From Octopus sinensis (Eukaryota), in the NCBI RefSeq assembly GCF_006345805.1, contig NW_021827374.1, forward strand, positions 1 to 10,525: a stretch of DNA of 10,525 nt. Direction: 5' to 3'. Within the stretch, counting starts at the first letter, position 1. Every line of letters starts with the position of its first letter. The position numbers and the translations under genes are program-made. The notes beneath the pieces are model-generated. The model made no database searches and was not told the origin of the DNA. It worked only from the letters and a program-made list of their open reading frames with translations. Shown here piece by piece: positions 1,693 through 10,326 of the stretch.

Positions 1693-1729
1693 ATATACAC
1701 TTTGTATATATAAATTATATATATAAATT

Positions 1730-2569
1730 ATGGCGACCAGAGCTCGCTCTGGGCTCAATGTCCGCGGCTACGAGACAACAGTGAGCGCTATGGCGACCAG
1801 AGCTCGCTCTGGGCTCAATGTCCGCGGCTACGAGACAACAGTGAGCGCTATGGCGACCAGAGCTCGCTCTGGGCTCAATGTCCGCGGCTACGAGACAACA
1901 GTGAGCGCTATGGCGACCAGAGCTCGCTTGGGCTCAATGTCCGCGGCTACGAGACAACAGTGAGCGCTATGGCGACCAGAGCTCGCTGGGCTCAATGTCC
2001 GCGGCTACGAGACAACAGTGAGCGCTATGGCGACCAGAGCTCGCTCTGGGCTCAATGTCCGCGGCTACGAGACAACAGTGAGCGCTATGGCGACCAGAGC
2101 TCGCTCTGGGCTCAATGTCCGCGGCTACGAGACAACAGTGAGCGCTATGGCGACCAGAGCTCGCTCTGGGCTCAATGTCCGCGGCTACGAGACAACAGTG
2201 AGCGCTATGGCGACCAAGCTCGCTCTGGGCTCAATGTCCGCGGCTACGAGACAACAGTGAGCGCTATGGCGACCAGAGCTCGCTCTGGGCTCAATGTCCG
2301 CGGCTACGAGACAACAGTGAGCGCTATGGCGACCAGAGCTCGCTCTGGGCTCAATGTCCGCGGCTACGAGACAACAGTGAGCGCTATGGCGACCAGAGCT
2401 CGCTCTGGGCTCAATGTCCGCGGCTACGAGACAACAGTGAGCGCTATGGCGACCAGAGCTCGCTCTGGGCTCAATGTCCGCGGCTACGAGACAACAGTGA
2501 GCGCTATGGCGACCAGAGCTCGCTCTGGGCTCAATGTCCGCGGCTACGAGACAACAGTGAGCGCTATGG
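1730..2569 (+). repeat. Tandem array of a 60-bp GC-rich unit (~14 units)
   Basis: Unit tgggctcaatgtccgcggctacgagacaacagtgagcgctatggcgaccagagctcgctc; starts at 1750, 1810, 1870, 1929, 1987, 2047, 2107, 2167, 2226, 2286, 2346, 2406, 2466, 2526; 37/60 GC, 6 CpG per unit; no substitutions, only three 1-2 bp deletions. Confidence 0.98.
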
Positions 2570-2709
2570 TTCCGTAATGGAATCGGCGGCTTATATTTAT
2601 TTGCTGCCGATAAATTTGGCGCGAGTGCGACGATTTGAAAATTTTAGGTCAGATATTGGCGAGGCATGGACGAGAATGCCTCGTGAAAAATATCTGTTCC
2701 GATTTGGCT

Positions 2710-2816
2710 ATTCCTTACTGATGAATCTAAGGGCCTATGGTAGATTGGCTTGATTTAATTTAATCAGGTTAGTTTACCATTAAACAGTAGAAGAAACGGT
2801 GCATCGTATAAGGAAT
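2710..2816 (+). ncRNA. Type I hammerhead ribozyme, copy 1 (predicted cleavage after A2808)
   Basis: Helix I attcctta 2710-2717 / taaggaat 2809-2816 (8 WC bp); CTGATGA 2718-2724; helix II tcta/taga (2726-2729/2788-2791) plus a 19-bp extension 2737-2755/2762-2780; GAAA 2793-2796; helix III ACGG/TCGT with TGCA loop; GTA triplet 2806-2808. Non-canonical A-A at 10.1/11.1. Confidence 0.85.
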
Positions 2817-3199
2817 TTCAGGGTAAATGTTTTTTAATTTTCTCCTGGTTTACGGAATTAATGTTATTTTGCGGTTGAAGCTTTTTGGCTGTTATTTCTA
2901 GTGGGTGAATGGCCTATTATGGCCGTTTCTTGATTGTGATATTGAACTTAAAAATGGTTTATGACTATTTAATTTTTTCCACTAGGCCGCTGGGGGCAAA
3001 AGAATTCTACAAAATTTTTTTGCCTCCCTATATTGATTAATTATGAATTTTCTGGTTGGTTCCGTAATGGAATCGGCGGCTTATATTTATTTGCTGCCGA
3101 TAAATTTGGCGCGAGTGCGACGATTTGAAAATTTTAGGTCAGATATTGGCGAGGCATGGACGAGAATGCCTCGTGAAAAATATCTGTTCCGATTTGGCT

Positions 3200-3305
3200 A
3201 TTCCTTACTGATGAATCTAAGGGCTATGGTAGATTGGCTTGATTTAATTTAATCAGGTTAGTTTACCATTAAACAGTAGAAGAAACGGTGCATCGTATAA
3301 GGAAT
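3200..3305 (+). ncRNA. Type I hammerhead ribozyme, copy 2 (predicted cleavage after A3297)
   Basis: Same core and helices as copy 1; only a 1-nt difference in the helix II internal loop (agggct). Confidence 0.85.
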
Positions 3306-3688
3306 TTCAGGGTAAATGTTTTTTAATTTTCTCCTGGTTTACGGAATTAATGTTATTTTGCGGTTGAAGCTTTTTGGCTGTTATTTCTAGTGGGTGAATG
3401 GCCTATTATGGCCGTTCCTTGATTGTGATATTGAACTTAAAAATGGTTTATGACTATTTAATTTTTTCCCACTAGGCCGCTGGGGGCAAAAGAATTCTAC
3501 AAAATTTTTTTGCCTCCCTATATTGATTAATTATGAATTTTCTGGTTGGTTCCGTAATGGAATCGGCGGCTTATATTTATTGCTGCCGATAAATTTGGCG
3601 CGAGTGCGACGATTTGAAAATTTTAGGTCAGATATTGGCGAGGCATGGACGAGAATGCCTCGTGAAAAATACCTGTTCCGATTTGGCT

Positions 3689-3794
3689 ATTCCTTACTGA
3701 TGAATCTAAGGCCTATGGTAGATTGGCTTGATTTAATTTAATCAGGTTAGTTTACCATTAAACAGTAGAAGAAACGGTGCATCGTATAAGGAAT
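3689..3794 (+). ncRNA. Type I hammerhead ribozyme, copy 3 (predicted cleavage after A3786)
   Basis: Same core and helices as copy 1; internal loop reads aggcct. Confidence 0.85.
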
Positions 3795-3930
3795 TTCAGG
3801 GTAAATGTTTTTTAATTTTCTCCTGGTTTACGGAATTAATGTTATTTTGCGGTTGAAGCTTTTTGGCTGTTATTTCTAGTGGGTGAATGGCCTATTATGG
3901 CCGTTCCTTGATTGTGATATATATATATAT

Positions 3931-4002
3931 ATATATGGATTTCGTGGACAGGAACTGAAACAAATCAATCGTATATATATGTATATATGTAAGTGTATGT
4001 GT
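3931..4002 (+). repeat. Left copy of the long target-site duplication of the RTE LINE (72 bp)
   Basis: Matches 6715-6790 with 3 substitutions and one 4-bp GTAT indel; ends exactly where the LINE reading frame begins. Confidence 0.85.
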
Positions 4003-6639
4003 TTTAGTATTGGCAACATGAATGACAATAGCCAGAGACTACTTGAATTTTGCACATACCATAACCTGTGCATCACCAACACATTCTTTCCCAACAAGAC
4101 ATCCCACAATGTATCTTGGAGACATCTAAGATCTCACCACTGGCATCAGTTGGATCTCATCATTACACGAAGATCCTTTCTGAATTCTGTTCAACTGACC
4201 CGTAGCGCGGATTGTGACACAGATCATTCACTAATAAGAAGGGCGAGGATTCTGCCTAAAAAAGTCCATCACTCCAAGAAAATGAGCCAACCACGCATTA
4301 ACACTGCCAGAACCTCGGACCCTACACTGCGACAATGTTTTGCTGTTTCTATCAAGGTTGCCCTCAGTAGCTGCCCAACCTCCTCTGCTGAAAGTAGGTG
4401 GAATTATATCAGGGAAGCTTTGTATACCACATCAATAAATACTTTCGGAATGAGAGAAAGGTAAAACCCAGATTTTGTTCAGTGCTGGGCTCTCAGAGCT
4501 GGAACAGTTATCGAAGCGAAGCGTACAGCTCTGATGCAATACAAGAGCGATTCTTCTACAAAGTCACTCGAGAACTCAGAAAGGCAAGAAATAAAACCCA
4601 ACTGACTGCCAGACGCTGTGCAAATGGGTATTGACAGGAAATCTGTCAGAGTATCCAGTCAGCTACTGACAGTGGCGACACCCGTGGGATGTATGCCGGT
4701 TTGAAGAAGGCCCTCGGTCCATCCGCAACCACCTCAGCCCCTCTGAAATCAACTACTGGAGATCTCATCAAGGACCAAAGCAAGCAAATGGATAGATGGA
4801 TGGAGTACTACCAGGATCTCTACTCACGAGAGACTACGGTAGCTGAGGCTGCAATCGAGGGTGTCAAGATCTTGCCAGTCATGTGTGAACTTGACAGTCT
4901 GCCATCTATAGCAAAGCTCACCAAATCTATTGACTCCCTAGCAAGTAACAAGGCTCCGGGAAAAGACGGCATCCCCTTAGAGATCATCAAAACCGGCAAA
5001 AACACCATCCTGCTTCGGGACATTCATGAGCTTCTGTGTCAGTGCTGGTAAGAGGGTACAGTCCCTCAGAATATGCGGGATGCTAACATCATTACGCTTT
5101 ACAAAAATAAAAGTGACCGTGATGATTGTAACAATTACCGTGGAATATCTCTTCTAAGCACAGTTGGAAAGGCCTCTGCTCGCATTATCCTGTCCAGGCT
5201 GCAACTAATTGCTTCTCGAATTTATCCAGAATCGCAGTGTGGCTTTAGAAGAAGCAGGTCAACTATTGACATGATATTCTCCATACGCCAACTTCAGAAG
5301 TCCAGAGAGCAGAACATGCCATTATATATGGCCTTCATTGATCTGACAAAGGGCTTTGACTTGGTAAGTAGAAAAGGCCTCTTCATCCTGCTCCAAAAAA
5401 TTGGATGTCCACCAAAGCTGCTGAGGATCATCAAATCATTCCATGCTAATATGCAAGGCACCATACAGCACAATGGCTCAACATCAGCCGTCTTCCAAAT
5501 AAAAAATGGGGTAGAGCAAGGTTGTGTCCTTGCTCCTACATTATTTGGCATCTTCTTCTCGCTGCTGCTGTCACATGCCTTTGAGACATCAGATGATGGA
5601 GTGTTTCTGCACAGTAGAAGTGATGGGAAACTGTTCAATCTCTCGCGTCTGCGTGCCAAGACCAAAATCTCAGAAGCGTCCTGATCAAGGAAATGCTATT
5701 TGCTGATGATGCCGCTCTAGTATCACACACAGAAGAAGCCCTACGAAGGCTCAGCAACTGTTTTGAGCAAGCATTTGGCAACTTTGGCTTAGTTATCAGC
5801 CTCAAGAAGACAAACATCATGGGTCAGACTACATCGGATATCCCAAACATACATATTGGAGACCACAGAGTATAGGAGGTGGAGAAGTTTACCTATCTTG
5901 GCTCTACCGTCACCTACAACCTATCCCTTGATGCTGAGCTCAATATACGCATTGGTAAAGCAGCTGCTGTGATGGCCCAACTCACCAAACGCGCATGGGA
6001 CAACAATAAGCTGACCAAGACCACAAAAATGAAGATTTACCAGGCATGTGTACTTAGCACTCTACTGTATGACTTTGACGCCATACACACGCCGTACGAC
6101 GCCATACGTCGCCTAAATATCTTTCACCTGCGCTGTCTCCGGAAAATCCATCGCATCAAATGGCAGAATCATGTCCCTAACAAAGATGTCCTCAAGCAAG
6201 CAGGAATACCAAGCATGTTTGCACTCTTCACACAAAGACGTATGAGATGGCTTGGACATGTTAGCCGTATGGAAGATGGTAGAATCCCCAAGGACATACT
6301 CAACGGAGAGCTTGCTAAGGGCACTAGGTCTGTGGGAAGACCGTTCTTACGATACAAGGATGTTTGCAAAAGGGACATGAATGCCTGCAACATCAATATT
6401 ACCAACTGGGAAGCAGTTGCCAGCAACCGTGGAGATTGGCGACGTACCGTAAAAGAGGGAACACAAGGAGTGACATAGTGAGAAAGGAGAAATGGAAAGA
6501 CAAGAAAAGACGTCAACAAGAAATTATGACATTACAACCAGCCAGGAACAGTCTTCGCTACATTTGCGGTACCTGCCAGAGGGAGTGTTTGTCCAGGATA
6601 GGACTACACAGCCACAGCAAGAGATGTATTAGGACATGA
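4003..6639 (+). pseudogene. Disrupted RTE endonuclease/reverse transcriptase ORF
   Basis: APE C-terminal motifs (GNMNDNSQRLLEFC, HWHQLDLII, DCDTDHSLI); RT motifs (NKAPGKDGIP, NNYRGISLLS, PESQCGFR, FIDLTKGFD, GVEQGCVLAPTLF, FADD at 5699-5710, EKFTYLGS); RWLGHVSRM; C-terminal CGTCQRECLSRIGLHSH zinc finger. In-frame stops at 4462, 4632, 5049 and 5873, plus frameshifts near ~4480-4570, ~5675 and ~6460. Confidence 0.93.
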
Positions 6640-6714
6640 AATGTAAAAGCCGGACTAGATTATTTTATGTGCAACTCCATTGTCTCCCGAGACAAAAAGG
6701 ATGCCAACAACAAC
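4003..6714 (+). mobile_element. 5'-truncated, inactivated RTE-clade non-LTR retrotransposon
   Basis: Single long pol-like frame in pieces, 3' UTR ending ccattgtctcccgagacaaaaaggatgc with a (CAA)n tail at 6705-6714, and flanking direct repeats. Confidence 0.92.
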
Positions 6715-6790
6715 ATATATGGATTTCGTAGACAGGAACTGTAACAAATAAATCGTATATATATGTATGTATATATGTAAGTGTATGTGT
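6715..6790 (+). repeat. Right copy of the long target-site duplication (76 bp)
   Basis: Begins immediately after the (CAA)n tail and matches 3931-4002. Confidence 0.85.
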
Positions 6791-6915
6791 GTGTCGCCCT
6801 CATCACTGCTTCACAACTGCTGTTCACTTATTTACATCTACATAACTTACTTGTTTCGCAAGAACAAACTAATAGAGTAAGTACTAGGCTTATCAACATA
6901 AAAAAGCACTAGGCT
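6721..6915 (+). mobile_element. Degenerate, 5'-truncated SINE (resembles an abundant octopus tRNA/CORE-type SINE body) into which the LINE inserted
   Basis: Motif order ggattt..gtagac..aactg..cgtatatatatg-(TG)n-gcttcacaac..tttac..taactta..aatagagtaagtactaggctt fits a repeat I recall from Octopus. Not verifiable within the window. Confidence 0.45.
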
Positions 6916-6987: not shown

Positions 6988-7056
<69 letters not shown>

Positions 7057-7057
7057 G

Positions 7058-7146
<89 letters not shown>

Positions 7147-7159
7147 TATATATATATAG

Positions 7160-8493: not shown

Positions 8494-9022
8494 TCTCTAT
8501 ATATAAAACTGAAATGCGTTTTTACCGCTTGGATCGCTTTCAATGCCACTACATCCCGTCCGATTCGCTCCAAAATTTACAGGGACATGTAGAATGAGGT
8601 GACGAAGCTCGTGGGCTACCTTAGAAATCCCTATCTTAAAAGGTGTGGTTGCTAGGGGCCATCATCCTCACTCACGCTATTTCCTCCTTTCCCTCTCTTA
8701 CTCCCCTTCATTTAGCCCACTCCCGTTATTTAATGTAAGAACATTTTCACTCACTCTATCTCTTAGCTTCCCATAATTTTTACTCATGTATCTCTATACA
8801 GAGAAACAAATAGTCCATCGCCATCGCCACCGCATTCTATTGTCTACCTGTCAACGCGCCCATCGACCAAATACAAACAGAACACACCAACGAGCGTTTA
8901 TATACATGTGTGTGTGTGTGTGTGTGTGTGTTCTATATATAAATATGTATATATAATGTATATATACAAAGTGTATATATCTGTATTTATGTATATTAAA
9001 CTTTTTAATACTTTTTGATAGT
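8494..9022 (+). mobile_element. Helitron-like non-autonomous element, 5' portion (family A, copy 2); may extend to ~10128
   Basis: Starts TCTCTATATATAAAACTG; 96.8% identical to 756-942 over 187 bp; carries ~225 bp (8681-~8905) absent from copy 1. Confidence 0.65.
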
Positions 9023-9771: not shown

Positions 9772-10060
9772 ATCATCATCATCATCATCATCATCATCGT
9801 TTAACGTCCGTTTTCTGTGCTAGCACGGGTTGGACAGTTTGACAGGGGTCTGGGAAGCCAGGAGGCTGCACCAGGCTCCAGTCTGATCTGGCAGTGTTTC
9901 TACGGGTGGATGCCCTTCCTAACGCCAACCACTCTGTGAGTGTAGTGGGTGCTTTTTCGTGCCGCCACGATCGGTTGGTGCTTTTTTACGTGCCACCAGC
10001 ACAGAAGCCAGTCAAGGCGGCGCTGCAATCGGCCACGTTCGGATGGTGCTTTTTACGTGC
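9772..10060 (-). mobile_element. 5'-truncated SINE/non-LTR retroposon fragment with (GAT)n tail
   Basis: Minus strand ends ...aaaacggacgttaaac(gat)9, a non-LTR-type tail. Three internal ggtgcttttt(a)cgtgc repeats near 9948, 9977 and 10045. Resembles a very common octopus repeat (recall). No clear TSD. Confidence 0.7.
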
Positions 10061-10096
10061 TGAAAGGAAGCAACAGAAAGTAACAACCACACTCTT

Positions 10097-10128
10097 ACCC
10101 GCGCGTAGAGCGGGTCACCTTCAGCTAT
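10097..10128 (+). mobile_element. Possible degenerate Helitron 3' terminus
   Basis: Perfect 6-bp stem acccgc/gcgggt (10097-10115), 9-nt spacer, then CTAT|T where CTAG|T is expected. Confidence 0.45.

Positions 10129-10326
<198 letters not shown>

Follow-up and report, generated by a model that had tools for sequence, protein, structure and literature searches.

A 489-bp tandem repeat with a divergent hammerhead-like motif in each unit, a candidate retrozyme-type satellite

Does a tandem array in contig NW_021827374.1 carry a self-cleaving ribozyme, and could it give rise to circular RNA (circRNA)? The window analysed here is the whole stretch of 10,525 nucleotides (nt) from position 1 of that contig (assembly GCF_006345805.1), and the element in question is a repeat of 489-490 bp in which every unit holds the elements of a hammerhead ribozyme. 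An earlier interpretation, made from the letters (the sequence-only reading), had proposed a retrozyme that generates circRNA. On balance we lean towards reading the array as a hammerhead satellite, or as a repeat of the type of the retrozymes without long terminal repeats (non-LTR retrozymes), whose divergent type I ribozyme is probably dependent on dimers and possibly already inactive.

The tandem array and its repeated motif

Tandem Repeats Finder (TRF) gives a period of 489 bp with 2.8 copies and 99% matches over 2567-3920. Units start at 2567, 3057 and 3547, and the third is incomplete, giving way after 371 nt to a (TA)n run. Pairwise comparison of the units shows differences at just 3-4 positions, mostly indels of one base in homopolymers. 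Either the array is thus very young or recently homogenised, or its variation is assembly noise.

2567..3920, + strand: array of 2.76 tandem units, each 489-490 bp long, about 99% identical, 37% GC (TRF, pairwise comparison)
3918..3935, no strand: (TA)n microsatellite that closes the 489-bp array on its 3′ side

The unit has a GC content of 36.8% and its longest open reading frames (ORFs) run to 69-95 amino acids. The 69-residue ORF has no Pfam match, and protein searches found no homologue of the unit in any frame. Within the window, no terminal repeats of the unit occur elsewhere and the array does not resume beyond the retrotransposon that lies downstream.

Both strands of the window were scanned with a descriptor that specifies the motif elements in order plus the pairing of the helices. 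Exactly three hammerhead-like sites were returned, one per unit and all on the + strand; the minus strand gave none.

2710..2816, + strand: hammerhead-like domain, copy 1 (descriptor scan), predicted cut after A2808
2710-2717 / 2809-2816, + strand: helix I of copy 1, ATTCCTTA / TAAGGAAT, 8 Watson-Crick pairs
2718-2724, + strand: core strand CUGAUGA, copy 1
2793-2796, + strand: GAAA, copy 1
2796-2807, + strand: helix III of copy 1, ACGG-UGCA-UCGU (pairs A-U, C-G, G-C and G.U, capped by UGCA)
Ending at 2808, + strand: cleavage triplet GUA of copy 1 (those of copies 2 and 3 end at 3297 and 3786)
3200..3305, + strand: hammerhead-like domain, copy 2, with CUGAUGA at 3208-3214, GAAA at 3282-3285 and a predicted cut after A3297
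3689..3794, + strand: hammerhead-like domain, copy 3, with CUGAUGA at 3697-3703, GAAA at 3771-3774 and a predicted cut after A3786
3200-3207 / 3298-3305 and 3689-3696 / 3787-3794, + strand: helix I of copies 2 and 3, ATTCCTTA / TAAGGAAT, 8 Watson-Crick pairs each

The core strand of a hammerhead reads C3-U4-G5-A6-N7-G8-A9, and CUGAUGA with this pattern starts at 2718, 3208 and 3697. All three copies likewise have G12-A13-A14, the A15.1-U16.1 pair and a base other than G at position 17 (GAAA starting at 2793, 3282 and 3771; U16.1 at 2807, 3296 and 3785; A17 at 2808, 3297 and 3786). Three helices surround the core, with helix I open-ended: helix I of 8 bp, helix II of 4 bp plus a 19-bp hairpin, and helix III of 4 bp. 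Beyond its 8 bp, helix I has an additional extension of 5 bp, and an internal loop CU/U lies 8 bp away from the core. The predicted cuts are spaced 489 nt apart.

To this extent the sequence-only reading is upheld. It had described a tandem repeat of about 490 bp at 2567-3920, the type I order of elements and a perfect 8-bp helix I in every unit, and cuts after 2808, 3297 and 3786 that would be 489 nt apart; TRF returns the repeat, all three + strand copies have the order and the helix, and the arithmetic and coordinates of the predicted cuts are correct.

Predicted folds of the single motif, the dimer and the circle

The minimum free energy (MFE) of a single 126-nt domain is -38.0 kcal/mol (z = -4.05), and the corresponding fold retains helix I and the long helix II. 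A single-motif fold constrained to be compatible with a hammerhead reaches -35.2 kcal/mol, 2.8 above the MFE. In two units the helix III segment can pair with its neighbour, being self-complementary.

2796..2807, + strand: self-complementary 12-mer ACGGUGCAUCGU, the helix III segment (folding computation)

Alone, ACGGUGCAUCGU is a marginal hairpin of -0.2 kcal/mol; with the segment of the next unit (3285-3296) it makes a 12-bp duplex of -17.5 kcal/mol. Two domains co-folded yield a double hammerhead at -87.5 kcal/mol, compared with -75.8 for two monomers. The natural two-unit transcript 2690-3320 also has the double hammerhead as its unconstrained MFE (-205.7 kcal/mol): 2796-2807 pairs with 3285-3296 as a 12-bp helix III, helix I forms in trans (2710-2717 / 3298-3305 and 2809-2816 / 3200-3207), both CUGAUGAA strands are unpaired, and all three helices are kept. 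Such pairing was not required by the descriptor, and the double-hammerhead fold is therefore independent support for a hammerhead satellite, of a kind that the sequence-only reading lacked. The support is modest, since the sole extra requirement is a palindromic tetraloop.

We infer a course of transcription, cleavage, circularisation and retrotransposition as follows. The array would be transcribed from the + strand as a multimer, in which neighbouring units would pair through the self-complementary helix III segment and exchange their helix I strands. Two three-way junctions, that is a double hammerhead, would result, with CUGAUGA(A) and GAA unpaired around GUA and the U that follows it. Cuts after A2808, A3297 and A3786 would then release 489-nt monomers with 5′-OH and 2′,3′-cyclic phosphate ends, which a host ligase of the RtcB type could close into highly structured circles, and the reverse transcriptase (RT) of a retroelement might copy circles or multimers into new tandem arrays.

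2809..3297, + strand: predicted 489-nt monomer, between two predicted cut sites

As a circle, this monomer has an MFE of -150.2 kcal/mol (z = -5.8) with 60% of its bases paired, in line with the strong structure described for circRNAs of retrozymes. Besides the helix II hairpin the unit holds several further strong hairpins; within 2809-3297, hairpins lie at 2992-3027, 3226-3269, 3072-3101 and 2908-2927.

When the hairpin stems of the unit are scored symmetrically for both strands, the + strand has 10 G.U pairs against 1 A.C, the counterpart of a G.U on the minus strand, beside 72 Watson-Crick pairs; 5 of the 10 G.U pairs fall in the 19-bp helix II hairpin. The asymmetry has p = 0.006 against a 1:1 expectation and about 0.13 once the composition of the unit (G>C, T>A) is allowed for, and we rejected it as proof of selection at the RNA level, as it is not significant after this correction. 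The excess on the + strand could come from RNA constraint, or from A-to-G changes fixed via an RNA intermediate.

Departures from the canonical hammerhead, and chance

Weighing against a hammerhead satellite are the departures of the motif from the canonical ribozyme, the pairing of its core in the single-copy fold, the lack of relatives, and the way in which the motif was found. The core is not complete, as had been claimed: the pair that closes helix II, 10.1/11.1 (A2725/A2792), is an A.A mismatch instead of G-C in all three copies, and because of it only 13 of the 15 conserved core positions are matched. This pair is the most conserved after 15.1-16.1, and the mismatch best tolerated there is U.U, not A.A (PMC3088659). 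Helix II takes up 66 nt (2726-2791), far more than in usual hammerheads; it starts with the 4-bp stem UCUA/UAGA, continues through a 2x2 AG/AG loop, a single G-C pair and an internal loop, and ends in the 19-bp hairpin.

2737..2780, + strand: distal helix II hairpin, 19 bp (14 Watson-Crick and 5 G.U) with a 6-nt loop, present also in copies 2 and 3

Helices I and II both contain internal loops; a recognisable contact between loop 1 and loop 2 is not evident. The search with Rfam covariance models, which the sequence-only reading had named as a check, came out negative: cmscan gave no hammerhead model at E<=1 on the window, nor at E<=10 on 2660-2860 (201 nt) or 2706-2820 (115 nt). By this standard test the motif falls outside the curated hammerhead families. 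The matches that were obtained are low-complexity noise resembling microRNAs, with no ribozyme family of any kind among them; spurious matches to mir-297, mir-3149 and a pestivirus untranslated region (UTR) come from the long microsatellites of the window. The MFE of the single motif, moreover, pairs the core UGAUG with the helix III CAUCG, and a duplex between units is open to every tandemly repeated hairpin whose loop is palindromic.

Other registers of the motif were considered and rejected. No further GAAA follows CUGAUGA before 2793, and pairing helix II through the proximal UAGAU (2741-2745) would place 47 nt between 11.1 and G12, which speaks against that pairing as the active fold. The 5′ strand of helix II, UCUA, can pair with the proximal UAGA(U) (2741-2744) or with the distal UAGA (2788-2791), and the 47 nt at 2745-2791 are bounded by two UAGA repeats. 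Deleting 2745-2791 leaves a 73-nt sequence with the layout of a compact hammerhead and an 11-nt loop 2. We speculate that 2745-2791 might be an insertion or inverted duplication in a ribozyme that was once canonical and compact.

Given the A.A at 10.1/11.1 and the oversized helix II, we expect a single motif to be weakly active at best and the dimer to be needed; the ribozyme may already be dead. As for detectable self-cleavage in vitro, we would sooner predict its failure than its success, though not with much assurance.

Relatives were sought by several routes, in collections that contain next to nothing of the source genome. Protein searches with the 69-residue ORF of the unit found none, a six-frame concatenation of the array gave 7,437 candidates of which none reached E<=10, exact look-ups of five ORFs of the window returned no record, and four scans for DNA patterns (two on metagenome contigs, one on viral contigs and one on contigs of prokaryotic genomes) yielded 0 matches. 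The 2.8 near-identical copies of the one locus offer no covariation in the helices.

Much of this would fit an array that was never a ribozyme, namely an ordinary young satellite or minisatellite, made by unequal exchange or replication slippage, which holds a hammerhead-like string by chance and whose RNA stays uncleaved. Such an origin would explain why the Rfam models do not match, why A.A stands at the most conserved helix pair and helix II runs to 66 nt, and why the motif lies in a long, imperfect hairpin with the supposed core paired in its MFE. Stems are common in the unit, the window is rich in other tandem repeats with a 60-bp array directly adjoining, and the motif came from a screen of an unstated number of windows. 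The descriptor that it matches is a relaxed one, fitted only after the motif had been seen.

How often chance yields such a motif was measured on first-order Markov sequence, 60 Mb in all and matched to the composition of the unit, using a relaxed descriptor that tolerates a mismatch at 10.1/11.1 and lets CUGAUGA and GAAA stand as far as 200 nt apart. For helix I of at least 5, 6, 7 and 8 bp the rates were 0.88, 0.33, 0.05 and 0 matches per Mb per strand; with helices II and III of at least 4 bp each they were 0.18, 0.083, 0.017 and 0. Helix I of at least 7 bp was found in none of 3,000 dinucleotide-shuffled windows, and 2 of 20,000 shuffled units gave at least 8 bp. Extrapolation of the Markov rates suggests about 0.1-30 chance matches of such quality per genome of Gb scale, a number to be set on the side of chance, and fewer still that would fall inside a tandem repeat.

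The shuffled windows and the random sequence thus held no equal match, and in the array helices I, II and III close exactly on the core strings. Nor did the descriptor demand the palindromic tetraloop or the double-hammerhead MFE with its unpaired cores. We therefore disfavour a chance origin of the motif and consider the ordinary satellite rather unlikely; it keeps some probability because the descriptor was fitted post hoc and because real genomes hold more hairpins than random sequence.

Known hammerhead repeats and the surrounding elements

Non-LTR retrozymes of metazoans are recognised as tandem arrays, dimeric to multimeric, of 150-450 bp units with a type I hammerhead in each and a GC content below 45-50%; they have no LTR, primer-binding site or polypurine tract and no coding capacity, their monomers are stable and self-paired, and they occur in many genomic copies with abundant linear and circular RNAs (PMC7229834, PMC7761336). 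The present array shares the tandem layout, the GC content (36.8%), the lack of coding capacity and of LTR, primer-binding site and polypurine tract, and the predicted, highly self-paired monomer, and has one hammerhead-like but non-canonical junction of type I topology per unit. At 489-490 bp its unit slightly exceeds that range (PMC7229834). The sequence-only reading had placed a young family near the large end of the size range; the identity of about 99% agrees with youth, but the size lies just outside the 150-450 bp reported. Its proposal of a retrozyme and circRNA generator finds partial support: tandem layout, low GC, non-coding sequence, structured monomer and dimer fold speak for it, whereas the ribozyme is non-canonical and the repeat is known from one locus.

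Among described systems, newt satellite 2 and the axolotl retrozymes (HHR_Amex1 and HHR_Amex2) are alike in their head-to-tail repeats with one type I hammerhead per unit (PMC7229834), and also in the short helix III with a palindromic tetraloop that permits a double hammerhead, the low GC and the lack of an ORF. Type I hammerheads of newt and axolotl with a weak helix III and such a tetraloop cleave efficiently as dimers (PMC7229834). HHR_Amex2 is mismatched at the base of helix II as well, but with U.U where the present repeat has A.A; with U.U it shows 22% cleavage in 1 h as a monomer and cleaves better as a dimer (PMC7229834). The amphibian units are 330-350 bp long, compared with 489-490 bp here, and number about 10^5 copies, compared with the one locus of 2.8 units examined here. 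Unlike them, the present motif has a helix II of 66 nt, no loop 1-loop 2 motif that we recognised and no Rfam match.

Similar in monomer size is the Dolichopoda satellite pDo500, with a unit of about 500 bp and a hammerhead in each (PMC2837043); pDo500 is a proven family conserved in multiple species with a canonical hammerhead (PMC2837043), whereas the repeat here is known from a single locus. The retrozymes of corals (Acropora) and mussels (Mytilus) resemble it as tandem type I repeats of invertebrates, one of them a mollusc, with monomers predicted to be highly self-paired, and the mussel ribozymes similarly lack most of the canonical loop-loop nucleotides (PMC7229834). They differ in size, with coral units of 220-240 bp and retrozyme RNAs of about 170-400 nt overall, and in having compact, canonical hammerheads that cleave efficiently as single motifs, thousands of copies and abundant circRNAs (PMC7229834). 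Penelope-like elements and Terminons share the type I topology, repeated sequence linked to a retroelement and TA-rich insertion sites; their hammerheads are minimal and stand in pseudo-LTRs (pLTRs) beside an RT/GIY-YIG ORF, whereas the motif here is oversized and has no such ORF (PMC8557442, PMC7761336).

The last comparison bears on another explanation, in which the hammerhead is genuine but part of a larger element (a Penelope pLTR or terminal tandem, or a composite transposon that includes the neighbouring 60-bp array) and the repeat is not an autonomous retrozyme. The elements concerned are these.

1729..2569, + strand: 60-bp tandem array, unrelated to the 489-bp repeat, 14 units, 98%, GC-rich, adjoining the 489-bp array on its 5′ side (TRF)
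4006..6714, + strand: non-LTR retrotransposon, that is a long interspersed nuclear element (LINE), 5′-truncated and frameshifted, with an RVT_1 domain (E = 6e-24)

The two arrays abut with a few bases of microhomology at the junction, and TA-rich microsatellite bounds both of them together (1692-1730 and 3918-3935). Some Penelope-like elements (Naiads) are biased to insertion at (TA)n (PMC8557442), and animal retrozymes have recently been argued to derive from Penelope pLTRs (bioRxiv 10.64898/2026.07.22.740005). Nearby, the two copies of a perfect 39-nt direct repeat (1452-1490 / 1654-1692) enclose an insert of 163 nt that has at its 3′ end an extra 60-nt unit (1600-1656); because one unit ends an insert so flanked, the 60-bp repeat may derive from the tail of a mobile element. 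Against a larger element, the check for a linked Penelope RT/GIY-YIG ORF found neither a Penelope-type ORF nor a match to the GIY-YIG domain in the window, the sole RT being that of the LINE, whose relatives are named 'jockey-like' and which has a flanking duplication of its own. Penelope hammerheads, furthermore, are described as minimal, without helix III or loop-loop contacts (PMC7761336), while helix III here has 4 bp. Naiads of cephalopods are reported to be old remnants without canonical hammerheads (PMC8557442), which is relevant only if the source is a cephalopod. A larger element of this kind seems to us very unlikely.

The LINE is separate from the 489-bp repeat and is not Penelope-like. 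The direct repeat of about 75 nt at its flanks (3931-4005 / 6715-6796) is unusually long and 79-90% identical between its copies, and a C-terminal Cys/His motif lies at about 6570-6630. A remnant of an apurinic/apyrimidinic (APE) endonuclease was read by eye at 4009-4464, and was set aside when Pfam and Protein Data Bank (PDB) searches did not confirm it. A search with the RT protein gave 1,917 matches, the best only 75% identical; the relatives, at 65-75% identity with the named ones from turtle, fish and Littorina, hint at a family that may be widely distributed or horizontally spread. Two contigs that were compared in this connection have no repeat in common with the window.

Other repeats surround these elements. 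A dispersed repeat occurs twice in direct orientation, at 756-1138 and 8494-9022, with 97% identity over 187 nt and then tails rich in TG/TA; the second copy holds about 220 nt more than the first, and the two bracket both tandem arrays and the LINE. At 9772-10125 an (ATC)9 run precedes a GC-rich stretch, about 330 nt long, with the look of a short interspersed nuclear element (SINE). This SINE-like block (9772-10110) may resemble the abundant octopus SINE, which is a lead; ARAGORN found no tRNA-like gene. A scan for bacterial promoters and terminators gave nothing of relevance. Very long microsatellites, TA-rich, (TATC)n, (TA)n and (AG)n, are found at 43-767, 6988-7157 and 10131-10326.

The strongest form of the hammerhead-satellite reading would be an active divergent hammerhead (with A.A and a 66-nt helix II) that works only as a double hammerhead, is missed by covariance models and standard descriptors, and marks an undetected class of retrozyme circRNAs of about 490 nt in a possibly cephalopod genome. 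We regard this strong form as unlikely. In the searchable literature we found no paper that ties hammerheads or retrozymes to cephalopods. Should the motif not cleave, it would be an instructive case of how good a chance or decayed look-alike of a hammerhead in satellite DNA can get. Should it cleave, the range of natural hammerheads would widen to a 10.1/11.1 pair other than G-C and to a very long helix II, surveys based on models would be undercounting retrozymes, and a large ribozyme-made circRNA of about 490 nt would be added to an animal lineage for which the searchable literature has none.

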